In this document: positions 2,453-61,023 of the stretch, one piece after another
Layout: every line of letters begins with the position of its first letter
How positions within the stretch are numbered: position 1 is the first letter of the stretch
From: Saccharolobus solfataricus P2
Lineage (GTDB): Archaea > Thermoproteota > Thermoprotei_A > Sulfolobales > Sulfolobaceae
Length of the DNA stretch: 64,000 nt
Reading direction: 5' to 3' (one strand)
Assembly: GCF_000007005.1 (NCBI RefSeq)
Contig: NC_002754.1
The notes under the pieces: model-generated
Seen by the model: only the letters and a program-made list of their open reading frames with translations
The model's database searches: none
What the model was told of the DNA's origin: nothing
Made by a program: the position numbers and the translations under genes

Positions 2453-4117
2453 TTACTTCAAGAGATAGTATTTATTGTCTATGCTGGCTATTGCAAGGGG
2501 TAACGCTAAGAATGGGAGTAAGAAGAGCATTACGCTATTACTTGTCTTTTGTGTATTATTGGTTAGTCCATATGCTGATGGATTTGTAACCCATGGTGGG
2601 TAGTATCCAGCAAAAGGATGGCCGGGGAATCCTAAGTATCCTAATCCTAATTTAGCTGCGGCTAACCATTCATTTTGTTCTTGTTGCATTGAAGATACTA
2701 ACGTAGAGTTCCAAGCAGATAATCCAACCTTGCCAACTTGCTGTAAAGTTAGTAATCCTGAATCTATTTGAGCGAAAACGTCATCAAACACTCCACCATC
2801 TGATAGTTGATAAACGAAGTTTTGCTCTGACGTATTTATTAATTGCTGATAATCATACCATTGTGCTGGTTGAGCATACCAATCCGTACCATTTTTATAA
2901 TAGGTTACTGCCTTGTATTTTGTCCAGACTTCCTGCCCTTGGTATGAAGACCAGAAATGGGCTAGTTGTAAAGCTTGTTGTTCTTGAGGACCTACTGGTA
3001 TACCAATTGTATCTATCACTAAAGCATAGTAGTGCTGTGTGCCTGGGAATGGAGTTTCCACTACAGAAACACTTGAGTTGCTTATGTATTGAGGTAACGG
3101 AGGATAAACTGTAACGTTTATATAACTTGCGTAATTAGTTACCCAGTTCCCATTGGCTTGAAATGCGACTTTACCTTGAGCTATTAGTGCAAATGCTTGT
3201 TCCCATGACATAGATTGCCAACCAGGGTAGTTATAGCTTGTGAAGTTCAAGAACCAATAGTTGGTTTCATTTATTAGTTTCTGAACCGTTGGATTGCTGA
3301 AGTTCAGTGTACCATATATTAGTTCATTGTAGAGTTGTGGCCCAGCTAAATATAAGAATATATCCTCCCATACGTTAAATTGATCCCATCCACCGTCTCC
3401 ACCAGGTATAATCCATGGACTCACACCGTGATTAGCTAGTTGTACAGTATCATAAACGAGAGTACTAAAGTTGTAGGGGAATGGTAAATTATATTCCCTT
3501 AACAATTGAGTGTTGACATAAAGAACTGCTCCCCTATGTACGTTAATTGGTACTGATAATAATGTACCATTATAAGCTCCAGCTTGTAATACTGCATAAA
3601 CCGCGTTATTAAGTAGTCCCCATTGGATTAAATAAGGAGTCATATTGACAAAAGTATGTATACCATTGGGCGCAGCCTCAACATAACTTATCATTTCTGG
3701 TCCATAGTGTACCTGAAATGCAGCTGGAGGTTTACCAGCTTGTATAAGCGCTAAAATAGCATATTTTGCATTTGTACCTCCAGCTCCTGGAATAGAATAT
3801 GTTTGCATTTGTAAGCCCGCATATTGCTTAACTGCAGGGATTATCTGGCTTAGTGCTTCCCCTCCATCACCTCCACCCCACCATGTATAGAAGACTACTG
3901 TATTGCTAGGGGTTGACGTGGTTGTGCTGGGTATTGTAGTAGTTGTAGTAAACGTGCTTGTTACTGTAGTAGTTACAGCAGTTGTAGAGGGCCCCTTGGT
4001 TAAAACGAAACCTGCTACTACTCCTATTATTATCACTATTACGATTACTGCTACTATTACTGCTATTTGGGTAGATGTTAATCCCTTAGCTAGACTATAC
4101 GGGTACTTCCTTTTCAT
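2453..4117 (-). CDS. glcS: Glucose ABC transporter substrate-binding protein GlcS
   Basis: MKRKYPYSLAKG/LTSTQIAV class III (PibD) signal, Thr-rich linker, sugar-SBP FYTWWGGG, C-terminal hydrophobic anchor. Divergent from permeases and glcV. Confidence 0.93.
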   Translation of the reverse strand: MKRKYPYSLAKGLTSTQIAVIVAVIVIVIIIGVVAGFVLTKGPSTTAVTTTVTSTFTTTTTIPSTTTSTPSNTVVFYTWWGGGDGGEALSQIIPAVKQYAGLQMQTYSIPGAGGTNAKYAILALIQAGKPPAAFQVHYGPEMISYVEAAPNGIHTFVNMTPYLIQWGLLNNAVYAVLQAGAYNGTLLSVPINVHRGAVLYVNTQLLREYNLPFPYNFSTLVYDTVQLANHGVSPWIIPGGDGGWDQFNVWEDIFLYLAGPQLYNELIYGTLNFSNPTVQKLINETNYWFLNFTSYNYPGWQSMSWEQAFALIAQGKVAFQANGNWVTNYASYINVTVYPPLPQYISNSSVSVVETPFPGTQHYYALVIDTIGIPVGPQEQQALQLAHFWSSYQGQEVWTKYKAVTYYKNGTDWYAQPAQWYDYQQLINTSEQNFVYQLSDGGVFDDVFAQIDSGLLTLQQVGKVGLSAWNSTLVSSMQQEQNEWLAAAKLGLGYLGFPGHPFAGYYPPWVTNPSAYGLTNNTQKTSNSVMLFLLPFLALPLAIASIDNKYYLLK

Positions 4118-8461: not shown

Positions 8462-9639
8462 TGAAGCCTTTTTAAACTTATTGTATTAAAAATTAACTTC
8501 TTAGATGCCTTGTGGACTTGTTGAATTTTCACAAAGAGCTAAGAACCATTGCACACCTAAATTGTATGTTTTGAGATAAATTGAAATGAAGATAATATAG
8601 TAGTTTATTTGGAAAAATTTAATATTTCAGAAAAGTGCTTTCTAGAGAATAATTTGAGTTATTTAAATAGCATACAGTGCTCAACGTTTTATACCTCGCA
8701 TAAAGTTAGAGTGAGATATGGAAGAGATAAATAGAATAGCGATTATAGGAGGAGTAAGGTCTTTTAGTGGTTCCGTAATTTGGCCATTTATCGGATTTGC
8801 GTTATATAAAGTTTATGGGTTCTCTCTAGATACCGTCTCGATATTTTACCTAATTCAAGCACTGATAAACGTTGTTGCGTCAGTTAGTGGGGGAATAGTA
8901 GTTGACTATTTGGGGAGGAGAAACGCCATGATGCTCTCAATGATTGTTTCCTCATTTGCTCTATTTACGGCATATCTAGTCAATCTCCCTATACCTATAG
9001 CAGGATTGATTCTATTACAAACGTTCTTTAACAATATATACAATGTATCTTCTACTGCAATAGTTGGGGATATTTATAAAAGGGCTGATTTAGTTAAGGC
9101 GTTTAGTAGGCAAAGGGTTGGAATTAATGCGGGATGGGCTTTAGGGCCATTGATTGGTGGCTATATTTTCACATTCTACGGATTCAGAACGCTATTATTA
9201 GTATCAAGCTTGATTGCGATCATACCGATATTTCTAGTGAGATTATTACCTGAATTCAAGGGTGGGGGGAATATCTTAAATTTCAATGTCAACAAGCAAT
9301 TTATTCTTTTCCTAATTTCTACCTTTCTTACTTTCGTGTTAGTGGGCCAATTGGGATTCGGTTTACTAACGTATTATAATGCCCAACTTCACTTCACAGA
9401 ATTTCAAGTTAGCATATTATCAGTTGTGTTTCACCAAATTATCTCACTTGAAAGATATTGTGTTAGTTCTTTCAAAAGGGAATTGATATAGAGAAAGATA
9501 GTGATATTATAGTGAAATATAGCATATTAACATTATTTGCAATAAACATAACGTGTAGATTCAGATTAAAGGGAGATAATCTGAATTTTTATCACGTGGT
9601 TAGAACGGTGTGCAGAGTGTCCTCTGCACGCCGAGGAAG

Positions 9640-10686
9640 TTAGAGAAGCCTGACGAAGGAGTCGAAGGAGAGAGGCTTCCTTTTCGTGGACTTGAAGTTG
9701 AAGAGGAGGTAATTCACGAGGTTCCACACTGAATCTAGGACAGTGTAATAGAGGTAGAGGAAGATCTTGTTGGTTAACTTCCTCACTAGTATTTTGGAAA
9801 AGTTCTTAGACTATGATCTAGTGGTATATCCTTTGCCTAAAGCTATAAACTTTCTGAAAGCACTAACGTACCTTATCCTGGCCTTCCTGACCTTGAAGCC
9901 CTCTTCGCTCTGCCATCTCAACCTGTAGAGCTCAGCTAGCTTGTAGGGATCTCCATTGAAGTTGGTAACGAAGATGAAGTGCCTGGGTTTCTCCTTGACG
10001 TATATCACTTCATAGTAGTAAAGGTCATTGTACTTCAGGACCCTATACGCAACGTAAACCCTGTCATTTACCTCGCATTTCTTCTCGGTTAGAGAGACGT
10101 TGGAGAGTTCCTTGAAGCCCTTCAGGTTGGTCTTACCTCCTACCACGGTCTTCACAGGCATCTCCTTGATTACCTTCAAGTTCAGGAAACCCGCGTCAGC
10201 AACAACGTAGTCTATCTTGAGGTGCTGAGCAACTTCGCTCACGGCCCTCATCAGGAACTGGGAGGGAGTATCGCTTCTCAAGTCAGCTATCTCCTCGAGG
10301 AGGGACAGCCTCAAGGGGAACACCAAGTCCACGGACCTCAACTTAACTCCCTTCCTCTTCCCGTTGTAGAGTTGAAATCCTTCCACCTTCCTCGACTCCT
10401 TCTCCCCCACGGTTATCGCGGTCTCGTCCACTGCAACGATTGTAGTCTCTCCCTCAACTTTCACGTGAGGGTAGAACTTGAAGCTCCTCTCCCCTTGACT
10501 CATCACCTTCTCTCCTTCCCTAACGACCTTCAAGTACTCCTTTCCCCTGTTCCCTGTCAACAGGAACGGAGCTGCGTCCGCGATCCTCGTGTCCAACTCT
10601 TGGGAGATAACGTTAAGATTATTGACGATGAAATAACTAGCGAGGGACTTCAACTCCGTTTTGAATCCCGTTTCATAAACTTGCAT
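9640..10686 (-). pseudogene. ISC1439B transposase interrupted by SM1-like MITE
   Basis: Homologous to the 655-1620 ORF up to RIRYV. The insert introduces a stop at 9811; removing it gives 321 aa. Confidence 0.88.
9787..9865. mobile_element. 79-bp MITE (SM1-like), 2-bp TSD AC
   Basis: Imperfect IR TAGTATTTTGGAAAAGTT / AACTTTCTGAAAGCACTA, flanked by AC on both sides. Second copy at 37160. Size matches SM1 as recalled. Confidence 0.85.
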
Positions 10687-11379
10687 AACGGAGTCATGGA
10701 GTCCCTCGCTTTAACCCTTCCCTGTTCGCCTCCTCCCTAGACCTCCCCTCCCCGCTTGATAATACTAAACAGATGATATTACCCTCTATATACAAACTCC
10801 TTTTTAACCATGCTTCTCGTTTAATCTAAAAATTTTTTGATAATCATGTTGAAATAAGCCGATTTTCACAACCATAACTCGATATTTTCCCCTACCATAG
10901 AAATTACATCATTTCTAGTAAAATTGGTGAAACACAACTGGCATATTATTTGCCATAAACGGACTTATGATTGTAGCATTCCAAGATCTGGTTGGCAGAC
11001 TTATAAGTAAGAGGATGTGGTTAATCGTAATCGGGACGCTAATTTATACCTCTGGATATTTCGGAGTCGCATTTATCAGTAACTTTCTAGTCGCATCCAT
11101 TGACATTGCGATTATAACTATCGCTGAAATGATAGTGACACCACTGTCACAAGCCATTGCCAATTCTTTAACAAATCAGAGTTCTAGGGGGAGACAAATT
11201 GGATTATATAGTATGGTTACTGGAATTGGTAGGGTATCCGGTTCGTCATTAATAAGTGAGCTTATGAACTATTATTTATACACTCCCGTCATTTTATGGG
11301 GAATAATGTCTTCCTTTGGTCTTGTTTCTGCAGCTATTTATTTGTACCAAATAAAAATAAAAAGGATAAAAATTTAATA

Positions 11380-11829: not shown

Positions 11830-12015
11830 ATGTTGGATAAAGTGAGGGAGATTGTAAGGAAAATTGACCCAAATGCAGAAATACAAATTAGCAGGAACAA
11901 AAAATTTACGAAAATAAGGGTGAAAAGCAATAGATACTGTGATAGAGCTAAGATTTGGATTTCTTTATATGAGTTATTTAAAGATCATGAAGGCATCATA
12001 ATAGAGGTAGAATGA
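11830..12015 (+). CDS. Small hypothetical protein, 61 aa
   Basis: ATG preceded by a TATA-like tract; globular composition; overlaps the convergent gene end by 20 nt. Confidence 0.45.
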   Translation: MLDKVREIVRKIDPNAEIQISRNKKFTKIRVKSNRYCDRAKIWISLYELFKDHEGIIIEVE

Positions 12016-12553
12016 TGACAATACCTAATAATAATACCGTAATTAAGTAGAAATAATCAAAATTATATTCAGTCAATTTTAAGAGAATTTTATTATTTTT
12101 CACAGATAAACAATACGTAGTTTCCCTTACAATTATTACTGTAATAGGTAAAAGGATAAGACTTGGTTTTGAGAGAATTGAGAGGGTGAGAAGTATTATA
12201 AAATTCATCTGAATTATCGAATTTATGGCCGACCATTGAATAACGTTTAATATTTTAGGTCTCATATTGCTGGGATAGTGGAGAACTTTACCTATTACGA
12301 GTTTTATTAGCACGTGTACCAATAAAAGAGAAAACATTATTCCTCTAGTTAATATATTATCGCTAATGTTGAGCCATTCTACTATCAAAATACCTACTAT
12401 ATAGTATGTAATAGTTGATACGATAGGGACTACGTATGATTCCTTCACCTTTCTAAATGAGTAAAAATAATAAGAAAAAAGTAATCCCTTATAGGGATCT
12501 AGCCCCTCTACTATCCCTAGGCTAAGGATAGCAATAAGAGTCAGAGGAAGCAT
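11996..12553 (-). CDS. Membrane protein coupled to the SBP56 gene
   Basis: Overlaps the SBP56 3' end. N-terminal LGIVEGLDPYKGLLF resembles the LGxxHGLNPxMGWLF start of membrane proteins I recall downstream of SBP56 genes. Confidence 0.65.
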   Translation of the reverse strand: MLPLTLIAILSLGIVEGLDPYKGLLFSYYFYSFRKVKESYVVPIVSTITYYIVGILIVEWLNISDNILTRGIMFSLLLVHVLIKLVIGKVLHYPSNMRPKILNVIQWSAINSIIQMNFIILLTLSILSKPSLILLPITVIIVRETTYCLSVKNNKILLKLTEYNFDYFYLITVLLLGIVIILPLL

Positions 12554-13922
12554 CTCCTCCCCTTAACCTAACTTGATGCGACCTAGCCTCTCCAAAATCC
12601 ACGAAGAACTCCTTATCCACATCTAGACCTCCATCTGGATTAGCATTTAGTTTAACCATCCATCCCTTTAAGCCCTCTGGATAGAATTGATTATCCCAAG
12701 TACTATATAGGGAATTGGTAACGTAAACTCTTTTTCCGTCCCTACTGATTTCAATCATCTGAGGAGCTCCAGTAAGTTTATGATCTGAGGGATGGTCAGC
12801 CCTATGAAATATACCTCCCAATTTTACCTTTCCAGTAAGTACTGGTTTAAATGGATTACTCACGTCGTACTGCCTAATCTCTCCTATACCCCATAAGCTA
12901 ACGTAAAGGAACTTATCATCAAGGCTTAAGTCTATATCAGTAACTAATGGTGGTACAGCCTTAAATGGTTTCAATATCTCAGGCAGTCCTCCCTCAGTAG
13001 GTTCCGCAGGGATTTCAATAACCTTTTCCCCATTCCATTTACCATCTTCGTAGTACCATAACCAGATTGAACTGCTCAGATCCTTTAGGCTTACTACCAT
13101 ATTTATGAATCCCATGAGTTTAGTTGGGTCATGTAGGGGTCTAAGCTCTAACGCCATCCTATTCTCTTCACCAAGGGTTACGCTTGATACCTTCTTTCTT
13201 CTCCTCAAGTCCCAGAAGTGTATCCTATTTCCATATCTATCTTTAAGATGTTCCAATCGAAGCCCGTTCTCAATAGTGTTTGGCACTGCCCACTCACTAG
13301 TTACCATTACTTCATTTGGTAAATTCCACCAGAAATCGTAAGCCAAATATTGGTCACTCCTATCTATCTCCCACTTGCCTAAAGGTTCAAAACTGTAATG
13401 GTCTAACATTAAAATTCCTCCTGGACCCTCACCGTTTTCATTGCCAAAAGCACTTATGTAGATACCATCTGGCCCACAATGTACTGTATGTAGCCTACTG
13501 TAGCCCGTTACTTTCTTAACCTCCTCTGGTTCTATAGTTTTAACTATATTAGGCTGTCTAGGGTTTAATTTTGTATCTACTATATAAATCCTTGAGGAAC
13601 GTAAACCGGGTACAACTAAGAATCTTCTCTCAAAATTTGGTCTTCCATTAGGGCATAAGGCGGAACTACAAGCATTCCAACCAAAATGGTGCAGCTCATC
13701 ATTGACATATGATAATTCAACCTTATGGATTACCTTAGAATAAGTTTCCGATTCAGGCTTTACATCAACTACTGCTATGAAATCTGGCCTATTTATTCCA
13801 GTTCCAGTGTATAAGCAAGCAACATAAGCTAAGTCCTCTGGAGGTGATTTCATGGCCATCTTTGGAGATGGATAAAACGTTGGATCTCTCTTAAAGGGAG
13901 CAAAAACTGACGGTAATTCCAT
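12522..13922 (-). CDS. Selenium-binding protein SBP56 / methanethiol oxidase-like beta-propeller
   Basis: DELHHFGWNACSS, HTVHC, YDFWW, GAPQMIEISRDGKRVYVTNSLYSTWDNQFYP and GGDASSDSY are SBP56 hallmarks. Confidence 0.92.
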   Translation of the reverse strand: MELPSVFAPFKRDPTFYPSPKMAMKSPPEDLAYVACLYTGTGINRPDFIAVVDVKPESETYSKVIHKVELSYVNDELHHFGWNACSSALCPNGRPNFERRFLVVPGLRSSRIYIVDTKLNPRQPNIVKTIEPEEVKKVTGYSRLHTVHCGPDGIYISAFGNENGEGPGGILMLDHYSFEPLGKWEIDRSDQYLAYDFWWNLPNEVMVTSEWAVPNTIENGLRLEHLKDRYGNRIHFWDLRRRKKVSSVTLGEENRMALELRPLHDPTKLMGFINMVVSLKDLSSSIWLWYYEDGKWNGEKVIEIPAEPTEGGLPEILKPFKAVPPLVTDIDLSLDDKFLYVSLWGIGEIRQYDVSNPFKPVLTGKVKLGGIFHRADHPSDHKLTGAPQMIEISRDGKRVYVTNSLYSTWDNQFYPEGLKGWMVKLNANPDGGLDVDKEFFVDFGEARSHQVRLRGGDASSDSYCYP

Positions 13923-13945: not shown

Positions 13946-13973
13946 TTATAAAGTTTTATTATTTGTGCAAATT
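13946..13973 (-). promoter_or_regulatory. SBP56 promoter: TATA box TTTATAA (13952-13946) with upstream motif AATTTGCACAAATA (13973-13960)
   Basis: TATA starts 30 nt before the ATG. The 14-mer is identical to one in the sat promoter. Confidence 0.6.
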
Positions 13974-14415
13974 ATTGAGGTTGAACATTCATGTTAATTT
14001 TCTTATCCCTTATTATGTACCACGTTCCCAATCCAATCGCCCCAAGACTTCCCTCAACGTCTTTAAAAGTAATCTCCACTGTAACTGCAGTTCTACCTTT
14101 TCTTATTACATTTGCTTCAACAGTAAACGGCCCCCTATACATTGGCTCTAGGAAATTTACCTTTAGTTCTTGTGTTACCTGATCCATTCCATCGTTTATT
14201 GATAGAACTGCCAATCCACCTGTGTAGTCTATGGACGCAACTATCATTCCACCATTTAGAATATTTCCCCTTCTTGTCAGCTCCTTCTTGAACGGTATTT
14301 GTGTTTTAGCATATCCCTCCTTTATCTCTAAAATTTTCACACCTAAATAATGAAATACATAATCGCTATCGTATCTCTGTAAAATTTTTTCAATATCATA
14401 GTTTTGAGAATCCAT
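13972..14415 (-). CDS. PaaI-family (hotdog fold) acyl-CoA thioesterase
   Basis: [32 protein letters not shown]. Confidence 0.88.
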
Positions 14416-19144: not shown

Positions 19145-20443
19145 ATGATATATTTTTTCATGGTTGATGCTGTAGAACTGTCAAGGAAATACGAGGGAAA
19201 AATTGAGATATATCCGAAAGTTCCTATCACCTCTTATAACGATTTCGCTCTCATATACACCCCAGGTGTTGCTGAGGTATCTAAGGCGATTTATAAGGAT
19301 CCGGATAAGAGCTTTGAGTTAACAAGTAGGTGGAACACGATAGCAGTAGTAACAGACGGAACTAGGGTTTTGGGATTAGGAAATATTGGCCCAACTGCAG
19401 CAATGCCAGTGATGGAAGGGAAATCTCTATTGTTCAAATACTTAGGAGGAGTTGACGCAATACCTTTGCCAATTAACGTAAAGAGTGCAGATGAGTTCAC
19501 AAATGTTGTAAAAGCTCTGGAAACGTCCTTTGGCGGGATTAATCTTGAAGATATTGAGTCACCAAAGTGTTTCTATATTCTGGAAAAATTGCAATCCATG
19601 TTGAATATTCCAGTATGGCATGATGATCAACAAGGTACTGCGGCAGCTATCCTAGCAGGGTTGATTAATGCGATGATATTAACCAATAAAGACCCTAAGG
19701 AAAGTAAAGTCGTATTTTACGGAGCTGGAGCATCAAATATTGCAGCAGCTAGAATTTTAGCTAAATATGGATTCAAATACGAAAATATTGTAATGATTGA
19801 TAGCAAAGGTCCATTGTATGCTGATAGAGAGGACGTAGATCACTTAATGTTACATCATAAGTGGAAGTACGAATTGGCTATAAAGACGAATAAATGGGAA
19901 GCTAAGGAGATAAAGGACGCGTTTAGTGGCGCAGATGCAGTAGTTGCGGCATCTACTCCAGGTCCCAATGTAATAAAGAAGGAATGGATAAGTCTGATGA
20001 ATAAGGAGGCAATAGTCTTTGCCTTAGCCAATCCAGTTCCAGAGATATGGCCGCAAGACGCTAAGGAGGCAGGAGCGAAGATTGTTGCAACGGGTAGAAG
20101 TGATTTCCCTAACCAAGTTAATAACTCCCTAATTTTCCCGGCAATATTTAGGGGAGTTTTGGATAGTAGAGCAAAGGCGATAACAGATGAGATGACGATT
20201 GCAGCCTCTGAGGCTCTAGCTAAATACGCTAGGGATAGGGGGATAAATGAGAACTACATAATACCTAGAATGGATGAATGGGAGGCGTTTTATGAGGAAG
20301 CAGCAGCAGTTGCTAGTAAGGCAGTAGAATTAGGGTTAGCTAGAGTTAAAAAGAGTAGAGAAGAGTTCAGGGAAATCGCTAAGGAGAGAATAATAAGGGC
20401 TAGGAAGATAATGAATTTGGTGATATCCACATGGTCACCATAA
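19145..20443 (+). CDS. NAD(P)-dependent malic enzyme
   Basis: [44 protein letters not shown]. Confidence 0.94.
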
Positions 20444-20895
20444 GGAGGGCTACTAAAGAGGACGTCAAAACGTTAATAGATTTTTTCAGTAGGATGTATA
20501 GGTTAAACAGCGAATTCGATCCACTACTATTGACTCCAGAGAATTTGGAGGAAAGGATTAACAAAGTGGTAGAGAAGAGTCTTGAAGATCAAAATGAGAT
20601 GATAGTAGTAGCGGAAGATCAAGGTAGGATAGTTGGCGCTGCCAGGGTTTTAATAATAGATAGGATATTTTATACACCGGAAAAGGAAGCATTAATTAGG
20701 GAGTTTTACGTACATCCTTCATACAGAAGGCAGGGAGTAGGTAATGAGATAGTAAATTTCATAATAAGCGAGTTGAAAGAGAGGGGAATAGAGATACTAG
20801 GAGCTGAATTCCCTTCTAGAAATTTAATAGCAATTTCGTTCTATAGAAAAATGGGCTTCAGAGAAATATATTGTGAATTCGTTAAGAAAATTTAA
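20431..20895 (+). CDS. GNAT-family N-acetyltransferase
   Basis: [12 protein letters not shown] motif A and [10 protein letters not shown]; 13-nt overlap with malic enzyme. Confidence 0.9.
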
Positions 20896-29492: not shown

Positions 29493-31097
29493 TTAGCTCG
29501 GTGGTAAAGAAGAAGAGAACGCTAATCTTAACAGTTGAAATAGTGACCAAACAACACCGTAGGTAGTATTTAGATTTAGCTCCCTATACTCTAAGGCTGA
29601 TTTCCCTTTAGTCTCCTTTAGCCTTTCAAAATACCACTCTATAGTTTTAAATACTTTATCGATCATGTACGTTACAATCGATCTTATGAAAGGATTCTTA
29701 CTAGTGTAGGCTATTGTATTTCCCAGTCTTCTAGTAATCTTCAGATCATATTTCCATGAAAGATATAATAAGTCCCAATATCTAGACGGCAATCTCTCTA
29801 ATGCAGGTAACGGATTATCCCTAATTTTAGATAAACCCATCGGTATAACTGGCAATGGAAATATCCACGCAATTGGTTCATGATCTATAATGTATTCAAC
29901 TAATTTTATTGAATCCTCAACGTCCTTATCAGTCTCTTCTGGATACCCTATGGTCATAGTATAGCAAGGGAAGATATAGCTTTCATTCATTATCGCTGTG
30001 GACTCCACTATTAAATCCTTCCAATTGGTATAGTTCCAAGGAAAAGCTTTCATCTTCATATATTTATTGAATATTTTTTCGCTTCCAGTCTCAAGCCCTA
30101 CCACTGGAGAAACAGCCTTCTCCTCATTCCATTCAGCTATCTCAGCCATAGCCTTAACAGTCTTAGGACTTAACTTGACTGGTGCTGCGGAAATATGAGC
30201 GAAGTTTATATAATCCACTCCTGCTCTCTTCAACTCAGCGTACAATCTTACTATCGCATCGTGGTTCACTTCATTAAGCCTTTTAGCCCCATATAGTAAC
30301 ATATCATCAGTTATCAAACTGACGTCTTTAATTCCAGCCTTCATATTCACTTCCACTTCTCTCATAATATAATCTAATGGGAAGGAAATGAACGTGTCCG
30401 GAGTTACTGAACAGAACCAACATCCTCTAGGGCAACCTCTAGTAATCTGAACCTCACCTCCCCTAGACGGGTTAATAATTGGTGGAATTTCATCTAATTT
30501 TCTAGGATATCTTCCCCTTACTACTCTAGGCACTTCTTCTCCTTGCTCCAACTTCTTGACTACTTCTGGGAAATCAACCTCAGCATGGCCTAAGAATATT
30601 ACATCTGCCCATCTCGGAGGATCCTTTTCCAATTGCCATGCCCCAGCCCCTCCTACTACGACTTTAAGATGGAATTTTTCCTTCAGCTTACTCACTTTTT
30701 CACCCAATTCGTCAAAAAATTTTGCAGTCCACGTCTCTCCTCCTCCAAAAATCATGCTTAATTTAGCACTAACCGGTTCAATTCCTCTTGGATCATGAAC
30801 GTTGATACCAATTACTTTAGTCCCTTTACTAGTTACTACCTTCTCCAGCTTTTCTGGTGTGGTAACTACTACGTTAAATCCACTTTTCGCCAATACAGCT
30901 TCAACTTTCCTAAGGGGGTAAGGCGCTACTATAGCCTTACCTTCTTTATCTGTGGACATAGGAGGTGCGAATATTCTATCCATGAAAAATCTCGGAACCA
31001 ATCTATAAGGTAAACAAGAAACATAGCCTAATGGTGCAATTCCACCATAATCTGTGAATGTACCTCTATCAGAAGTTAAAACTACATCATACGTCTT
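29493..31097 (-). CDS. B12-binding-type radical SAM protein; start codon uncertain
   Basis: QITRGCPRGCWFC (CxxxCxxC), GLETGS. Frame stays open 32 codons upstream of the TTG at 31001, up to a TAA at 31100-31098. Confidence 0.8.
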   Translation of the reverse strand, partial: KTYDVVLTSDRGTFTDYGGIAPLGYVSCLPYRLVPRFFMDRIFAPPMSTDKEGKAIVAPYPLRKVEAVLAKSGFNVVVTTPEKLEKVVTSKGTKVIGINVHDPRGIEPVSAKLSMIFGGGETWTAKFFDELGEKVSKLKEKFHLKVVVGGAGAWQLEKDPPRWADVIFLGHAEVDFPEVVKKLEQGEEVPRVVRGRYPRKLDEIPPIINPSRGGEVQITRGCPRGCWFCSVTPDTFISFPLDYIMREVEVNMKAGIKDVSLITDDMLLYGAKRLNEVNHDAIVRLYAELKRAGVDYINFAHISAAPVKLSPKTVKAMAEIAEWNEEKAVSPVVGLETGSEKIFNKYMKMKAFPWNYTNWKDLIVESTAIMNESYIFPCYTMTIGYPEETDKDVEDSIKLVEYIIDHEPIAWIFPLPVIPMGLSKIRDNPLPALERLPSRYWDLLYLSWKYDLKITRRLGNTIAYTSKNPFIRSIVTYMIDKVFKTIEWYFERLKETKGKSALEYRELNLNTTYGVVWSLFQLLRLAFSSSLPPS

Positions 31098-31777
31098 TTA
31101 ACTCACCTCCAGATTTAACATGTCACTTTCTTAAAATAAAAACTTTCATATTATAAAAAGTTAGAAGGATAACTTTTAACTTGCACTTAGACAAGAAAGA
31201 AAACTGTCACTTTATTCAGAAGCAGATTGCGCCTCGTCGTACTCCTTATCGCTAACCTTTTCAAGCCACTCTACCGATTTACCGTTTAGCTTTTCTTGAA
31301 TAGCTATATGGGTCATTGCAGTCGTTGACGTAGCACCATGCCAGTGTTTCACGCTAGGAGGAGTCCATATAACATCTCCAGCCTTTATCTTTCTAGGAGG
31401 GTTTCTCCAGGTTTGAATTAACCCTGTTCCGTAAGTGACTATTAATAGCTGCCCTAATCGGTAGACCCAAAATCATTTTACAAAAAATAATTTTGGTTGG
31501 GTAATATCAGATTCTGAAAAATAATAGAATTTATAGCTTTAACAAGAACGCAACTAATTGAAGAAAGATTTAAGGTGAGGAAGCCGGTATTATCACGTGG
31601 TGAAGACAAGGTGATAACACCTGGTCTTCCCCACCAAAATAATATACAACAAGTAGGGTATAAATTACTTTCCATGTTGAGCTTCAAGGGAAGAAAGGCT
31701 GAGGAGGTATCGAGAGTTCTGGTCTCCGCGTGCTTGTGGAACGACTCCGTGGAAAGCAAGTCCAAAGGGTATAACGT

Positions 31778-37566: not shown

Positions 37567-38788
37567 CGGTAGACCCAAAATCATTTTACAAAAAATAATT
37601 TTGGTTGGGTAATATCAGATTCTGAAAAATAATAGAATTTATAGCTTTGACAAGAACGCAACTAATTGAAGATAGATTTAAGGTGAGGAACCCGGTATTA
37701 TCACGTGGTGAAGACAAGGTGATAACACCTGGTCTTCCCCACCAAAATAATATACAACAAGTAGGGTATAAATTACTTTCCATGTTGAGCTTCAAGGAAG
37801 AAAGGCTGAGGAGGTATCGAGAGTTCTGGTCTCCGCGTGCTTGTGGAACGACTCCGTGGAAAGCAAGTCCAAAGGGTATAACGTGTCACCACAGACCGTG
37901 AGGAACTACGTGGAGGAGCAGGGAACTGAGGTGATCGAGAAGCTATTAGAGTCCATGAGGAGGATTTCCATGGAGATACTCAAGGGAGTGAAGGAAGTCG
38001 ACATCTCCATAGACTGGACAACCAAGACGTGGTATGGTAAGCCGGTGGAGGGACTGGGTAGTTCAGCCAAGGGGAACTCGTGGAACTACTACCGCGACCA
38101 CGAAGTATCAGAATATGGTGCTCCTCCTAGCTTTCGTTCCCCAAGTTAACGGGATGAGCAAGGATGAGATCGTGAAGCTCCTCATGGAGCAAATTGTGGG
38201 AATGGGCCTCAAGGTGGGGCTCGTAACCTTGGACGCGGGATTCTACACCGTGGAAGTCCTCAAGTTCATATCGCAGTTCAAGTTCGTGATAGGAGTCCCT
38301 GTGGGGGACGTGAAGATCTACGAGGAGTTCGACGGAGAGTACACGACAAACAGTAAGAGGCATAAGAAGGAAGAGCAGGTCAAGTTCAGACTCCTGGTGT
38401 ATGGTAAGGAAATCGTTAAGAAGAGGAAGAAGACCGTGGTGTACTTCGCGAGGGCGACCAACCTCGACCTACCCAAGAGGGAAGTGCTGAAGTTGTACAA
38501 CAAGGTTAGGAGTCCCATTGAGACGTCTTACAGGAACATCAAGGCCTTCCTTCCCTTCACGAGCTCCACCAAGTTCATCTTCCGCGAGTTGATCTTCGTG
38601 CTGGCCATGATCTTCTACTCGCTTTACACCGTGTTTAAGAACGTCATGACAAGAGAGGAGTTTAGATTGCTGCTCATCCTCTGCTTTCTAGACGATTTAT
38701 CTGATCTAAAGGATTTTATATTTAATCTTGAGGAAACACTTATTAATACTATAGATTTATTTTTATGGAGGTGATTTTGGGTCTACCG
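37567..38788 (+). mobile_element. ISC1225, 1222 bp, transposase frameshifted (1-nt and 2-nt deletions)
   Basis: Same IRs as the 31459 copy. ORF pieces 37647-37901, 37841-38149, 38034-38774 with IDWTTK, LDAGF, RSPIETSYR. TTA repeated at both junctions. Confidence 0.92.
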
Positions 38789-55248: not shown

Positions 55249-55944
55249 TTATCTAAATTTCCATAGAATTTCTCTCAATCTCACAACGTTTCCTAAAACC
55301 AACAAAGAAGGAGTAGCTAAATTATTACCAACTTCAGCTAGTTTCTCCAATTTGTTGACGTGTACCTTCTGATCCAGATAAGTCCCTCTTTCTATAACTG
55401 CTACGTCTTCTGAAGGATCTCTCTTAGCCATCAACCATTTACTCACCTCCTCTAATCTCCTGCCTCCCATTAAAACTACTAGAGTACCATAATCTGGAAT
55501 TTTTTGAAAGTTAAAGAGCTTCCCACCTTGTGAAACTGCACTTACGATTGTTACCATATCGGAGACTCCGTTGAAAGTGAGTGGTATCCCAGCATACGCA
55601 GGGACTGAGTTAACTGACGAAACTCCGGGTATTACCTCACACTCTATACCGTCTTTAATTAACTCTTGACAAATTTTCCCTCCCCTTCCAAATATGTAGG
55701 GATCTCCGTTTTTTAGCCTAATCACAAGCTTATCTTCCAAAGCGTACTTTCTCAATAAATCAACTTCAATATCATCATTACTGAGGAATATTACAAAACT
55801 CGACGGCTTAGCGTAATTAATGAGTTCTCTGGACACTAACTTATCGTAGACTATTACATCAGCCATTTGTAAATATTTAATACCCTTTAACGTTATTAGT
55901 TCAGGATCACCAGGACCAGCACCTACTAAAACTACCTTACCCAT
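55249..55944 (-). CDS. cobA: Uroporphyrinogen-III C-methyltransferase (SUMT)
   Basis: GAGPGDPELITLKG, LKNGDPYIFGRGG, PGVSS. Confidence 0.92.
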   Translation of the reverse strand: MGKVVLVGAGPGDPELITLKGIKYLQMADVIVYDKLVSRELINYAKPSSFVIFLSNDDIEVDLLRKYALEDKLVIRLKNGDPYIFGRGGKICQELIKDGIECEVIPGVSSVNSVPAYAGIPLTFNGVSDMVTIVSAVSQGGKLFNFQKIPDYGTLVVLMGGRRLEEVSKWLMAKRDPSEDVAVIERGTYLDQKVHVNKLEKLAEVGNNLATPSLLVLGNVVRLREILWKFR

Positions 55945-57829
55945 ATCTACTCACCTCCTCTAAACGTTTTCTTAGCAGATCGTGATACTCCCTATAGCCC
56001 TCAATCTTTCTATCAAACTTGTGAGGTTTCATGAGGTCTTTAGTCTTTTCGTGACCCTTCAACCACTCAATTATCTTCTTATTACCCAGCAACCTAAATA
56101 CTAGACTAGGATCTTCACTTATATCCTTATTCTTTTCGTATAGTTCAAATAACGCTTCAGTTACATCAGCTAGTCTATTGGACGGAACTTGATATAGGTA
56201 AATAGAATTCTCGTCCCAGTCAATTAGTGGTTCTCCTAAACTTCCATTTCCTCCACCTATCTTTAACATGTAAAGCTCATATCCACTACCTACCCAACTA
56301 ATGGGATGAAGGGCTGGTCTTGAACACTGAGCTACACAACCTGACAGTCCTATTGAAACTGGAATGTCTTTCCACCCTCTTCTCTCTAACTCGTCAATTA
56401 GACTTGGAAGGAATCTTTCAGAATCAGTGAAGGACAATTTACATGTTGGAAATCCTACGCACGCCGTTGAGTTAATCCTTAAACTGGAATATGGCTTTCC
56501 GTCTCTGAATCCGTAGTTGAACTCCCTAAGTATCCCATCGATTTTCTCCTTCTGCGGCTGGTCTATTTCAGTAATTAATAGATGTTGATTTGGAGTTATG
56601 TAAAACATTAAATTATCGAAATTATCTGCAATATATCTGATCATACTTTTTGTCCTACCGTTTTTGCCGTCTATTAGCCTACCGTTTTCAACGAAAATAC
56701 CATAAGCCCACTTATTATCGCCTAAATTTATCCAACCCAAATGTAAGTCCTTGTGGGTGAGATCTACTTTAACTATTTTGCCTAATTGTATCCCAGAGTG
56801 TTCCCTTACTTTTTCCCTTAACCACTCCAATCCCATCTTATATACAACGTACTTGAATCTAGCCCAATGCCTGTTCTTCCTATCTCCCCACTCCTCTTGT
56901 ATTGTCACAATAGCATCTAACACCTTTATTAATTCGCTATCGTTTACTACAGTACCAATCGGAAGTCCAAGAGCCGAAAAAGTTGGATAAGAATTGTTCT
57001 CACCCATTGATCCACCAACGTATATTTGATAACCTATTACCTTTTCATCCTCTATTAAAGGGACTATGCCTATATCGTTGGATTGAACTTCAACGCAATT
57101 ATCAATTATATACTTTCCGTTAATTGTTCTCAATACCCCCGCTATGGCGATCTTAAACTTTCTCGGTAAAAGATTTTCACCATATTTGAAAGATTCTCTA
57201 TCAAATTGTCTATTTTCTATCAGAGGTATTTCAAAGACTTGAAGATATAAATCCAAAGGTAATCTAAAGTAGTTAGCAATTTTTCTAGCTAATGAATTCG
57301 CGTCGAAAACCCAATACTTGGAAAGTGGGCAAGCTATCGTATTCCTTACATTATCTCCACAACCGTTTACAGTGAGAAAACCAGATTCAGCGACCTCTCT
57401 TATAAGGTTAGGTAAATCCCTTTTCTTTACGTGGTGAAATTGAATAGCTTGTCTCGTAGTCAGTTTTAGAGATGGTGAGGGATATCCAGTATAAGCATCC
57501 GATATCGTATATTTGTTGGAAATATCGTCTAAAATTCTCCATTGTTTAGAGCTTATTGGACCTCCTCCGGGAATCGGTAGCCTTACCATGTATATCCAAT
57601 CTTTGACTCCATTTAATTTCATCTTATCTCTATTGAATTCAATGTATATCCCGAAACTTTTAGCTATCAAGGACACTTCCTTCTCGAGATCTTCTCTAGA
57701 TAAGTCGTGGAATGACGAATATATTCCTATTGTATCCTCAGTTAATCCTTTAGTTTTCAGCTTTGCTCTCTCTTCCTCACTGTAATCTTTAGGATCTGTT
57801 CTAAAATTGGGCTCTATGGGAATCTTCAC
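55937..57829 (-). CDS. sir: Siroheme/[4Fe-4S] sulfite reductase (ferredoxin-type)
   Basis: TTRQAIQFH, CGDNVRN, LPRKFKIA, CVGFPTC and GCVAQC ligand motifs. Confidence 0.9.
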   Translation of the reverse strand: MKIPIEPNFRTDPKDYSEEERAKLKTKGLTEDTIGIYSSFHDLSREDLEKEVSLIAKSFGIYIEFNRDKMKLNGVKDWIYMVRLPIPGGGPISSKQWRILDDISNKYTISDAYTGYPSPSLKLTTRQAIQFHHVKKRDLPNLIREVAESGFLTVNGCGDNVRNTIACPLSKYWVFDANSLARKIANYFRLPLDLYLQVFEIPLIENRQFDRESFKYGENLLPRKFKIAIAGVLRTINGKYIIDNCVEVQSNDIGIVPLIEDEKVIGYQIYVGGSMGENNSYPTFSALGLPIGTVVNDSELIKVLDAIVTIQEEWGDRKNRHWARFKYVVYKMGLEWLREKVREHSGIQLGKIVKVDLTHKDLHLGWINLGDNKWAYGIFVENGRLIDGKNGRTKSMIRYIADNFDNLMFYITPNQHLLITEIDQPQKEKIDGILREFNYGFRDGKPYSSLRINSTACVGFPTCKLSFTDSERFLPSLIDELERRGWKDIPVSIGLSGCVAQCSRPALHPISWVGSGYELYMLKIGGGNGSLGEPLIDWDENSIYLYQVPSNRLADVTEALFELYEKNKDISEDPSLVFRLLGNKKIIEWLKGHEKTKDLMKPHKFDRKIEGYREYHDLLRKRLEEVSRYG

Positions 57830-58545
57830 TTCACCTCTCTATAATGAAGCCCACATTCCTTGTCACTATTCTGCTCCCACCACCATCTACCAGCTCTTGG
57901 ATGCTCCCAAGGTTTAACTGGTCTAGTACATGGTACACATCCTATACTCTTATACCCTTTATCGTAGAGCTTATTATAAGGAACATTATTTTTATTTATA
58001 TATTCCCATACCTGTTCCCATGTCCAGTCAGCCAACGGATTTAACTTAATAATCCCTCCATTGACTTCGTCTATTTCTATTTTCCTTATCCTCCCTCTAG
58101 TGAAATTTTGTTCTCTCCTTAGCCCAGTTATCCAAGCTTCCATTCCATCCAACGCTCTCTTTAGGGGTCTAACTTTCCTCACTTCACAGCACGCCTTTCT
58201 AAGTTCAACACTTTTGTAAAATAAGTTGATTCCATACTTATTAACTAGATCTTCTACCTCTTTATAGTCTGGAAAATATATCCTTAAGTCTATGTTATAC
58301 TTTTTCACTATTTCCTCTATTAAGTCATAACTTTCTTGGTGGAGTCTACCAGTATCTATTATAAAGACTCTTGGTTTTTCAGTAACCTTACTTAACATAT
58401 CTAGTATTACCAAATCTTCAGCCTGAAGACTACAAGCTAAGGCGATTTTAGGGTAAAATTTCTCTATTCCCCATTTCAGCACTTCTAGGGGTTCCTTATC
58501 TTCGAACAATTTATTTAGGGAGTCTAACTCATCTTTGCTAAGCAT
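57826..58545 (-). CDS. cysH: Adenylylsulfate (APS/PAPS) reductase, Fe-S-type signature
   Basis: IDTG, ACCEVRK, SIGCVPCT, ECGLH. Confidence 0.92.
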   Translation of the reverse strand: MLSKDELDSLNKLFEDKEPLEVLKWGIEKFYPKIALACSLQAEDLVILDMLSKVTEKPRVFIIDTGRLHQESYDLIEEIVKKYNIDLRIYFPDYKEVEDLVNKYGINLFYKSVELRKACCEVRKVRPLKRALDGMEAWITGLRREQNFTRGRIRKIEIDEVNGGIIKLNPLADWTWEQVWEYINKNNVPYNKLYDKGYKSIGCVPCTRPVKPWEHPRAGRWWWEQNSDKECGLHYREVK

Positions 58546-58586
58546 CAGAATAATTGAGTAAGGATTAATACTTTAGTGTTTCGATA

Positions 58587-58620
58587 TGTGCAAAATTTGC
58601 ACAAATAGCTAAATATATAA
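58587..58620. promoter_or_regulatory. 17-bp palindrome TGTGCAAA-A-TTTGCACA plus sat TATA box TATATAA (58614-58620)
   Basis: Perfect 8-bp arms centred in the 100-bp cysH/sat divergent gap. Confidence 0.65.
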
Positions 58621-58645: not shown

Positions 58646-59866
58646 GTGAATCTCATAGGACATGGCAAGGTTGAGATAGTTGAGAGAATAAAAACGATTT
58701 CAGACTTTAAAGAGTTACATAGAATTGAAGTCAAGAGACAGTTAGCACATGAGATAGTGAGCATAGCTTACGGTTTCTTATCTCCATTAAAGGGTTTCAT
58801 GAACTATGAGGAAGTTGACGGTGTGGTGGAAAACATGAGATTGCCAAATGGCGTGTTATGGCCAATACCATTAGTGTTCGATTATAGTCAAAATGAAAAG
58901 GTCAAGGAGGGAGATACTATAGGAATAACTTATTTAGGAAAGCCGTTGGCAATTATGAAGGTAAAGGAAATCTTCAAATACGATAAGCTGAAAATAGCAG
59001 AGAAGGTCTACAAGACTAAAGATATTAAGCACCCTGGAGTGAAAAGAACGTTGAGCTATGCAGATGCTTTCTTAGCAGGGGATGTTTGGCTAGTTAGGGA
59101 ACCACAGTTTAATAAACCATATTCGGAATTCTGGTTAACTCCCAGAATGCACAGAACCGTCTTTGAGAAAAAGGGTTGGAAAAGAGTGGTTGCATTTCAA
59201 ACTAGGAATGTTCCACATACTGGTCACGAATACTTAATGAAGTTCGCTTGGTTTGCAGCAAATGAGAACCAAAAGGTAGATGAACCTAGAACAGGTATTC
59301 TAGTTAACGTTGTCATTGGGGAGAAGAGAGTAGGTGATTATATAGATGAGGCAATTCTTTTGACTCATGATGCGTTATCTAAATACGGTTACATAAGTCC
59401 GAAAGTACACTTACTTTCATTTACTTTATGGGATATGAGGTATGCTGGACCTAGAGAGGCTCTGCTTCACGCTATAATTAGGAGCAATTTAGGATGTACT
59501 CACCACGTTTTTGGTAGGGACCATGCGGGGGTTGGGAATTACTATTCACCCTATGAGGCGCATGAAATATTTGACAGCATTAATGAAGAGGACTTACTGA
59601 TAAAGCCGATATTTTTAAGGGAAAACTACTATTGCCCCAGATGTGGCAGTATAGAAAACGAAATACTCTGTGACCACAAAGATGAGAAGCAAGAGTTCAG
59701 TGGTAGCTTGATAAGGAGTATAATATTAGATGAGGTAAAGCCAACTAAAATGGTAATGAGACCAGAAGTATATGATGTTTTAATGAAGGCAGCCGAGCAA
59801 TATGGGTTTGGGAGTCCCTTTGTGACCGAGGAATACTTGGAGAAGAGGCAGAGTATATTGGGGTGA
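58646..59866 (+). CDS. sat: Sulfate adenylyltransferase
   Basis: FLSPLKGFM, WPIP, FQTRNVPHTGHE, VFGRDHAGVG. Confidence 0.95.
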   Translation: MNLIGHGKVEIVERIKTISDFKELHRIEVKRQLAHEIVSIAYGFLSPLKGFMNYEEVDGVVENMRLPNGVLWPIPLVFDYSQNEKVKEGDTIGITYLGKPLAIMKVKEIFKYDKLKIAEKVYKTKDIKHPGVKRTLSYADAFLAGDVWLVREPQFNKPYSEFWLTPRMHRTVFEKKGWKRVVAFQTRNVPHTGHEYLMKFAWFAANENQKVDEPRTGILVNVVIGEKRVGDYIDEAILLTHDALSKYGYISPKVHLLSFTLWDMRYAGPREALLHAIIRSNLGCTHHVFGRDHAGVGNYYSPYEAHEIFDSINEEDLLIKPIFLRENYYCPRCGSIENEILCDHKDEKQEFSGSLIRSIILDEVKPTKMVMRPEVYDVLMKAAEQYGFGSPFVTEEYLEKRQSILG

Positions 59867-60172
59867 ATGGAAGTGAAAATCTACATTTGGCTAAATGAGG
59901 AGTTGAGTAGAAAGTTCGAGGAGTTAGGATTAAAGCACGCTAAGGAAGTATTGGGAGGAATGAAACGTATAGAAATAGATGTTGAACAAGAAATGGTGGA
60001 GGAGATAATTAAGCTGTTTCCCAACGCTAAAGTTGACTCATCAACTACAAAATCCATTGAACTTTTGCCGAAGAGTTTCAAGAACGAAATATTAAAGATA
60101 ATTATTGAGAAGAAATTGGAACCAAGGGAAGCCTTAAGGGAGGCAATAAAAAAGTTTAAAGGGGATATTTGA
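59867..60172 (+). CDS. Conserved hypothetical protein, 101 aa, possibly ribbon-helix-helix-like
   Basis: Abuts the sat stop; N-terminal VKIYIWLNEELSRKFEEL and C-terminal PREALREAIKKF. Confidence 0.7.
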   Translation: MEVKIYIWLNEELSRKFEELGLKHAKEVLGGMKRIEIDVEQEMVEEIIKLFPNAKVDSSTTKSIELLPKSFKNEILKIIIEKKLEPREALREAIKKFKGDI

Positions 60173-61023
60173 TGTTAGATTTAATTTATCTGTCAGTAAT
60201 TATCTTCATTGCTTCTATACCTACTGGTGCATTTGCATACGGATTTTCATCCACAGCAACACCGTTACTTCTCATAAGGTATACTAACAAGCAGATCTCC
60301 CCAATATTGAACTTTATAGAGATGTTTCAAAATTTAACGAATGTTATTTTAAATTTTAAAAATTACAGTATAAGATCTTTGGTATTCACAATTTTCGGGA
60401 CTCCCGGTGTACTTATAGGTTCTATAGTAGGGGCATATATCCTAAAAATTTCGGCAAATGAAACCCTCTTTAAGGTTATAGTTTACAGTATATTAATACC
60501 ACTAATCTTATTGCAAGCTGCTGGTTTTAGAAAAGAGATAGGTTTGGAGAAGTGGAAAAAAATAGGATATTTAGTAACCTTTCCAGTAGGTGTCTTGTAT
60601 GGCGTAACAACAATAAGTGGACCACCTTTAGCACTCATAATAAATAATCAAGGGTTAACAAAACAAGAATTTAAGTTCGCTATAGCGGTACTTAGAACAG
60701 TAGAAAGCGTTTCAACTTTTGGCGCCTACCTTACTTTAGGAATCTTTAACCCACAAGTAATCTATTACGCTACCGTCACCTCACCTGCTGTAATAGCTGG
60801 CATGCTAATAGGAATATTCATGGGCAATGTAATAAAACATAAGGAGGATTTCAGAAGGCTTGTCATGAGTTTTGATAGTTGGATTAGTGGATATGGACTT
60901 TCGTTCAACTTAGCTAAGGTTGTGGATTATGGAGTATGGTATTGGCCCATGACTGCAATAATTGCAATTGACTTGTATCTTTTGTTAAGGTATATTAAGG
61001 GTAGGAGAAGGCTGTTAAAATAG
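60169..61023 (+). CDS. TauE/SafE-family sulfite exporter
   Basis: GAFAYGFS, GSIVG, GVTTISGPP; eight-TM pattern. Confidence 0.85.
   Translation: MMLDLIYLSVIIFIASIPTGAFAYGFSSTATPLLLIRYTNKQISPILNFIEMFQNLTNVILNFKNYSIRSLVFTIFGTPGVLIGSIVGAYILKISANETLFKVIVYSILIPLILLQAAGFRKEIGLEKWKKIGYLVTFPVGVLYGVTTISGPPLALIINNQGLTKQEFKFAIAVLRTVESVSTFGAYLTLGIFNPQVIYYATVTSPAVIAGMLIGIFMGNVIKHKEDFRRLVMSFDSWISGYGLSFNLAKVVDYGVWYWPMTAIIAIDLYLLLRYIKGRRRLLK

Follow-up and report, generated by a model that had tools for sequence, protein, structure and literature searches.

A palindromic box between cysH and sat as a putative operator of sulfur-acquisition genes in Sulfolobaceae

The window analysed here, a 64-kb stretch (64,000 nucleotides) of the Saccharolobus solfataricus P2 chromosome, carries two divergent sulfate-assimilation operons. 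On the minus strand, cysH (PAPS_reduct; SSO2911; 57826-58545) is followed by the genes for a sulfite reductase (SSO2909; 55937-57829) and for a siroheme (uroporphyrin-III) methylase, a tetrapyrrole methylase (SSO2908; 55249-55944), the whole operon spanning 55249..58545. On the plus strand, sat (58646-59866), a DUF6955 gene (59867-60172) and a TauE gene (60169-61023) form the operon 58646..61023 (SSO2912-2914). The DUF6955 protein, of ~100 aa, is encoded directly after sat in every Sulfolobales locus examined. A further minus-strand unit (11996..13922; SSO2860, SSO2858) consists of SBP56, a putative methanethiol oxidase (12522-13922), and of an overlapping membrane ORF of 185 aa. A 4HBT thioesterase gene (13972-14415, -) lies upstream of it. 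Apart from the membrane ORF, these genes were assigned with Pfam, which agrees with the identities first proposed for cysH, sat and SBP56. The SSO gene order and numbering also agree with the genes of the window. SBP56 matches PDB 2ECE along 460 residues; this chain is that of a hypothetical selenium-binding protein of 462 aa.

The ORF overlapping the 3′ end of SBP56 encodes a hydrophobic membrane protein of ~180 aa, without a Pfam family and with invariant HY and N residues. It is always the next gene and is conserved in all Sulfolobales loci examined (window 11996-12553 (-); L082 11349-11897; L084 11370-11924; L091 11352-11906; L094 11346-11879; L096 5049-5591). A metagenome search with the alignment of this ORF (orf185) gave 6 loci. 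The protein is probably an accessory partner of SBP56. The window is, besides, dense in IS elements, with several transposase fragments (DDE_Tnp_1, IS110-type, DUF772), and contains long near-identical repeats, direct and inverted (31459-31730 and 37567-37840; 1-135 and 41685-41818; 9421-10930 and 436-1860).

The gap between cysH and sat is 100 bp long, and no Rfam family was found in it. It contains a perfect 17-bp palindrome, TGTGCAAAATTTGCACA (58587..58603), with the core box GTGCA-N5-TGCAC. The centre of the palindrome, at 58595, is the midpoint of the gap, 51 nt ahead of the sat GTG and 50 nt ahead of the cysH ATG. An extended inverted repeat, ATATGTGCAAA / TTTGCACAAAT (58584-58594 and 58596-58606), has 11-nt arms with one mismatch (91% complementarity). 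At sat, the right arm of the palindrome is the 14-mer AATTTGCACAAATA (58594..58607, +), comprising the sat-proximal half-site and its flank and spanning 39-52 nt ahead of the sat start. Only one other exact copy occurs in the window, in the SBP56 promoter (13960..13973, -). This copy spans 38-51 nt (-51..-38) ahead of the SBP56 start, has the same orientation relative to its gene, corresponds to a half-site only and overlaps the stop codon of the thioesterase gene. The original prediction had reported the two identical 14-mers at 58594-58607 (+) and 13973-13960 (-), the palindrome to which the sat copy belongs and the overlap with the upstream stop codon, and each of these observations was reproduced.

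The motif is separated by 6-7 nt from a TATA-like box, TATATAA at 58614-58620 for sat and TTTATAA at 13952-13946 for SBP56 (7 nt). The sat box, read from the sequence as AAATATATAA (58611..58620, +), is preceded by a BRE-like AGCTAAA. The putative cysH box, CTAAAGTATTAAT (58564..58576, -), is preceded by the BRE-like ATATCGAAA and is kept in A. manzaensis and S. tokodaii. The TATA box of SBP56 (13946..13952, -), centred ~27 nt before the ATG, is kept in orthologues. The conserved flanks ATATCGAAA and AGCTAAA look like the BREs of the two divergent promoters. Because the TATA-like box lies ~27-30 nt before the GTG, the sat mRNA is predicted to be leaderless or near-leaderless.

Identity over 14 nt is by itself weak evidence, because isolated exact pairs are frequent in this AT-rich window (37% G+C), which contains dozens of exact 14-mer pairs. 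We compared the -80..-21 regions of 66 ORFs in all 2145 pairs, with an offset of at most 3 nt, against 400 shuffles. The longest run shared by any pair was the 14-nt run of sat and SBP56, and a run of 14 nt or more arose in 1.75% of the shuffles (P ~0.02; window-wide P 0.0175). The second-longest match, 12 nt between the gene at 2453-4117 and SBP56, was rejected as being just the shared BRE/TATA, TAAAACTTTATAA. The partial match near 47215, against which the original prediction had cautioned, is real, but the sequence at 47215-47228 amounts to a half-site standing alone, with 2 mismatches, and the same holds for the matches at 3182 and 8524. The radical-SAM gene at 29493-31001, probably the hydroxyurea (HU)-induced SSO2881, has a lone GTGCAAG in the wrong orientation, which was not accepted as a site. 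An exact TGCA-N5-TGCA, ACTGCAATAATTGCAAT (12.4 bits with the matrix described below), occurs at 60952-60968, within the 3′-terminal part of the TauE gene; it is nearer to the Ss-LrpB consensus than the sat box and may be due to chance. The window by itself thus gives a modest signal, and the case rests on cross-genome comparison.

Orthologous loci were retrieved through exact-protein look-up. In the sulfate-cluster promoters of seven Sulfolobaceae lineages, the core RTGCA-N5-TGCAY is constant while the flanks diverge, and the invariant alignment columns read TGC.A....TGCA. In S. tokodaii, 35 bp around the box are identical to the window and the remainder of the cysH/sat gap has diverged. The sequence TTCGATAT[G/A]TGC[A/G]A..TTTGCACAA[A/G]TA is kept in the cysH/sat gaps of A. 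manzaensis, S. acidocaldarius SUSAZ, S. tokodaii and one metagenomic lineage. In a distant Sulfolobaceae MAG, whose Sat is 69% identical, the core GTGCAAATAATGCAT alone is retained at the same place. The cluster of M. sedula is rearranged, with sir (sir-cobA) divergent from cysH-sat and a gap of 109 bp, longer than that of the window. Two boxes, GTGCAATTTTTGCAC and CTGCAAATTTTGCAT, lie side by side in this gap, and for both the distance from the box centre to the respective start codon is 48 nt. The SBP56 gene of M. sedula lies ~3 kb downstream of this cysH-sat cluster (L091 2814-11389). At least five genera, among them Sulfolobus, Sulfurisphaera, Acidianus and Metallosphaera, have kept the box. 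A self-contained 12-bp site of the form ATTTG-CA-CAAAT was also considered. It is less favoured than TGCA-N5-TGCA because the ATTTG/CAAAT arms vary among orthologues and the TGCA-N5-TGCA is kept.

The genes concerned also respond together. In the S. solfataricus RNA-seq study of HU treatment, just 25 transcripts changed significantly (PMC5134839). Among the induced ones were SSO2908:2909:2911 (cysG, sir, cysH; log2 3.4), SSO2912:2913:2914 (sat, a hypothetical gene, TauE; log2 3.6), SSO2858 together with SSO2860, the selenium-binding protein (log2 3.7), and the rhodanese SSO1817 (log2 3.4; PMC5134839). The cysH, sat and SBP56 operons of the window thus share an element and change together, and their orthologous promoters likewise carry the element. 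In a co-expression study of S. islandicus, sulfite reductase and ATP-sulfurylase share a separate subcluster. Other genes are also induced by HU, and co-induction is therefore no proof of one factor.

We then consider SBP56, for which the window offers a half-site only. A 17-column matrix was built from sulfate-cluster sites only and used to scan 273 kb, later 312 kb, of non-redundant Sulfolobales DNA with 288 upstream regions, 274 of them untrained. The top score, 26.0 bits, is that of the palindrome TGTGCAAAATTTGCACA. The best untrained match, at 24.5 bits, is a perfect palindrome, ATGTGCAAAAATTGCACAT, in the A. brierleyi SBP56 promoter, and exceeds most training sites; likewise untrained, the SBP56 promoter of A. 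manzaensis (GTGCAATATTAGCAT) reaches 16.6 bits. Of the 274 untrained upstream regions, the five that score best include four from SBP56 or rhodanese genes; among these five are a Metallosphaera rhodanese promoter (16.6 bits) and an A. manzaensis peroxiredoxin (13.4 bits). Outside these promoters, exact TGCA-N5-TGCA occurs only ~3 times in 383 kb. The SBP56 region of the window, with the 17-mer equivalent CCTCAATAATTTGCACA centred at -50/-51, ranks 11th of the 274 untrained regions.

It could be argued that the cysH/sat palindrome is the only functional operator, the SBP56 14-mer of the window being a chance half-site and SBP56 being induced by another route. The low score of the SBP56 17-mer (7.4 bits against 26 for sat), the absence of its left half-site and the abundance of exact 14-mer pairs in the window, for which the window-wide P is only 0.0175, are in line with this explanation. 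So is a change in two close relatives (L100 and L104), whose SBP56 promoter equals that of the window except for TTTGCACA -> TTTACACA in the half-site core, ~50 nt before the ATG. However, this G-to-A change affects position 4, where R is permitted in LrpB-type boxes at a cost of only ~4-fold. Moreover, Acidianus brierleyi and A. manzaensis have full or near-full boxes at the same position of their SBP56 promoters. The half-site TTTGCACAARTAA was footprinted by comparison in SBP56 promoters of other lineages: in the more diverged L102 and L103, TTTGCACAA[A/G]TAA retains its distance to the TATA box, and the sequence upstream has diverged. Among nine aligned SBP56 promoters the sole invariant upstream columns fall in ATTTGCA, a conservation based on few AT-rich sequences. 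Finally, the offset of the SBP56 site equals that of sat and cysH, and the operons are co-induced with near-identical fold changes. We consider a chance half-site at SBP56 unlikely.

The form of the site at SBP56 varies between lineages. A single, promoter-proximal half-site is present in Saccharolobus (the window), S. acidocaldarius and the RB850M lineage, and the M. sedula and M. javensis SBP56 promoters have TTACATAA only. A zinc-finger/TenA-THI-4 gene (L096 2693-3589 (-)) is the divergent neighbour of SBP56 in the RB850M lineage; the TenA/THI-4 gene SSO2089 is likewise HU-induced in S. solfataricus. Conservation of the motif in Sulfolobales orthologous promoters, proposed initially as a check, was thus borne out by the boxes of seven sulfate-cluster lineages and of Acidianus SBP56. 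The proposal that one factor would co-regulate sat/cysH and SBP56 gains support from three independent sides: the footprinting, the fixed geometry and the published co-induction (PMC5134839).

The rhodanese gene was predicted as a further member because SSO1817 is HU-induced and because S. acidocaldarius and S. tokodaii have a rhodanese gene behind their sulfate clusters. In these two species the rhodanese promoters have TTGCACA 12-13 nt before the TATA box (ATTTAAA). The prediction was examined in further lineages, the rhodanese set having been chosen partly after a hint had been seen. The Metallosphaera rhodanese promoter has a full box, AGTGCAGTTTTTGCATA, by far the best of its locus, and the rhodanese promoter of a Sulfolobaceae MAG has AAGGCAATAGTTGCATT (11.1 bits) at the canonical TATA distance. 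No S. solfataricus rhodanese homologue was found among the top matches listed.

We next asked what kind of element the box may be. Its centre precedes that of the TATA box by ~22-25 bp and is 48-53 bp away from the start codon. The 22-25 bp spacing, measured from TATA boxes assigned by eye, is observed at sat, cysH, SBP56, M. sedula sir and cysH, A. brierleyi SBP56 and the Metallosphaera rhodanese. The resemblance of the flanks ATATCGAAA and AGCTAAA to BREs and the AT-richness of the region might suggest that the block belongs to the core promoter or plays a structural role, as would an extended BRE or intrinsically bent DNA, and needs no dedicated factor. This is extremely improbable. The invariant positions are the G/C-containing TGCA cores rather than AT tracts, and the element is missing from ~270 other upstream regions, being restricted to sulfur-related genes.

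The same geometry bears on the sign of regulation. With TATA boxes assigned by eye, the site lies just upstream of BRE/TATA at a fixed helical phase, as expected for an archaeal upstream activator. A position upstream of BRE/TATA is typical of archaeal activators (Ptr2, LysM-type sites). Activation is favoured because of this position. A repressor operator, for example of a cysteine- or sulfide-loaded repressor wrapping or occluding both core promoters, would fit several observations: sulfate assimilation should be switched off in tryptone medium, HU causes a strong derepression or induction, and Lrp-type proteins can wrap DNA (PMC3584215). In A. manzaensis, in addition, a 1-Cys peroxiredoxin gene (19911-20591) has the box-like site TATGCAAGATTTGCGTA (L081 19881-19897, 13.4 bits) overlapping its core promoter, which is a repressor-type position. 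Nevertheless, the box of the sulfur operons is upstream of BRE/TATA and not over the TATA box or the TSS, and the strict 22-25 bp spacing, kept by the box duplication of M. sedula, suggests a stereospecific contact with the pre-initiation complex. Repression is therefore the less probable mode, though one that deserves attention, and we retain activation as the working assumption.

The box is a dyad-symmetric site of the 13-17 bp size with an AT-rich centre found in generic Lrp/AsnC-type operators. It also closely resembles the Ss-LrpB operator, a 15-bp palindrome. Its core GTGCAAAATTTGCAC is identical at 13 of 15 positions to the Ss-LrpB consensus TTGCAAAATTTGCAA, keeps C5/G5′ in both halves and differs only at positions +/-7 (A to C). 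Saturation mutagenesis showed that the C5/G5′ pair is critical for the Ss-LrpB box (PMC4046817, PMC1802622). Indeed, Table S3 of PMC4046817 lists GTGCAAAATTTGCAC as an in silico Ss-LrpB site at -58 of Sso2912 (sat), with a theoretical KD of 3469 nM, and a cysH counterpart at -57. The original prediction had called the motif undescribed. This stands for the link between motif and regulon, which was not found in the literature searched and appears to be new, whereas the palindrome is already in print as a putative Ss-LrpB site (PMC4046817).

If the palindrome were an operator of Ss-LrpB (Sso2131), sat and cysH would belong to the Ss-LrpB regulon of S. solfataricus. In addition to the 13/15 identity, the theoretical KD of 3.5 µM, only ~2-fold weaker than those of the bona fide porD, Ss-lrpB and Sso2127 sites (PMC4046817, Table S3), speaks for this assignment. 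However, the A-to-C change at position 7, present in both halves, is the worst substitution there (KDrel 6.96), and in vivo no ChIP-chip enrichment was observed at Sso2911/Sso2912 (PMC4046817). Furthermore, the Ss-LrpB gene is reported to have been acquired by S. solfataricus alone (PMC3584215), whereas the box is found in Sulfolobus, Sulfurisphaera, Acidianus and Metallosphaera, so that the factor is not present wherever the site is conserved. Because the protein is species-specific and the box is kept in at least five genera, Ss-LrpB was excluded as the cognate factor, and we regard its control of these operons as very unlikely. This probable independence from Ss-LrpB also appears to be new.

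Since the box is of the Ss-LrpB type (RTGCA, AT-rich N5, TGCAY), the putative factor most likely belongs to the Lrp/AsnC family. A conserved protein whose specificity resembles that of LrpB would be the most economical candidate. The Lrp-like proteins kept throughout the Sulfolobales are Sa-Lrp, LysM and the Saci_0992 group (PMC3584215). We retained two Lrp/AsnC candidates, the Saci_0992 orthologue group, for which no characterisation was found in the literature searched, and an AsnC-type gene close to the Metallosphaera rhodanese. The latter, a full-length Lrp/AsnC-type gene (L105 4777-5235 (-)), is divergent from the rhodanese-orf79 operon at a distance of 765 bp and is a weak lead. It is the only regulator gene found linked to the examined loci; in the window itself, neither locus has a transcription-factor gene beside it. 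A gene of HxlR type (45268-45651, +) was rejected, being paired with a metal ATPase; its divergent neighbour (43129-45216, -) encodes an HMA-domain P-type ATPase for heavy metals. In the main text of the LysM ChIP paper, neither Sso2911, Sso2912 nor cysH is named, and the literature searched describes no sulfur-assimilation regulator or motif for Sulfolobales. To our knowledge, no regulator of assimilatory sulfur metabolism has been established for Crenarchaeota.

Overall, we propose that the palindrome is the operator of a conserved, putative dimeric factor of Sulfolobaceae, probably of the Lrp/AsnC family, that controls sulfur-acquisition genes. From the sequence comparisons and the published expression data, we put the probability of this reading at roughly 65%. 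One dimer would bind midway between the divergent cysH and sat promoters, abutting the BRE/TATA of each, and could thereby contact both pre-initiation complexes. Both operons would be under its control, and activation, by recruiting TBP/TFB, is the probable mode. In longer gaps, such as that of M. sedula, a second box would preserve the spacing. The same factor may act at the SBP56-orf185 and rhodanese operons from the same TATA distance, through a site that is full in some species and reduced to a half-site with its flank TTTGCACAAATA in Saccharolobus. There, a strong proximal half-site plus flank may suffice, or binding may be weaker.

Such a regulon would gather the routes to reduced sulfur: from sulfate to sulfide (sat, cysH, sir, siroheme synthesis, TauE), from thiosulfate (rhodanese) and possibly from methanethiol (SBP56). 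The methanethiol oxidase activity of archaeal SBP56 is assumed by analogy with bacterial and human homologues (PMC5739008, PMC10362175). More tentatively, and with odds below even, the box may be the operator of the first dedicated master regulator of archaeal sulfur assimilation. This Lrp-like protein, with the Saci_0992 group as candidate, would sense a sulfur metabolite, activate both divergent promoters from one central dimer and recruit SBP56 and rhodanese for scavenging. The box provides a ~25-bp bait for finding the regulator of assimilatory sulfur metabolism, and the cysH/sat gap a compact bidirectional control region in which one archaeal factor may serve two promoters. Sulfur acquisition would also give a physiological context to the widespread, enigmatic archaeal SBP56 and its conserved membrane partner, and offer one explanation for the joint HU response of these operons.

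The proposed sulfur box can be compared with known systems. It shares with the Ss-LrpB box TTGCAAAATTTGCAA the 15-bp palindrome, TGCA cores 5 bp apart, the AT-rich centre and C5/G5′. In contrast, its outer positions are G/C (RTGCA...TGCAY) instead of T/A, it shows no in vivo Ss-LrpB binding and it is conserved in genera lacking Ss-LrpB. By analogy with LysM at lysW, BarR and Ptr2 (PMC3597687 and general knowledge), it would be a single palindromic dimer site just upstream of the BRE of metabolic operons, and the divergent promoters of BarR resemble those of cysH/sat. Unlike in these systems, the sequence specificity is another one, and the single cysH/sat site appears to serve two promoters symmetrically. 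As in the bacterial CysB and CymR regulons, genes for sat, APS/PAPS reductase, sulfite reductase and siroheme synthesis are induced together, and a sulfite/sulfonate-type permease and sulfurtransferases are part of the set. However, the archaeal set has archaeal promoter architecture, without evidence of LysR or Rrf2 proteins, and it includes SBP56, which is no classical member of the bacterial Cys regulon.
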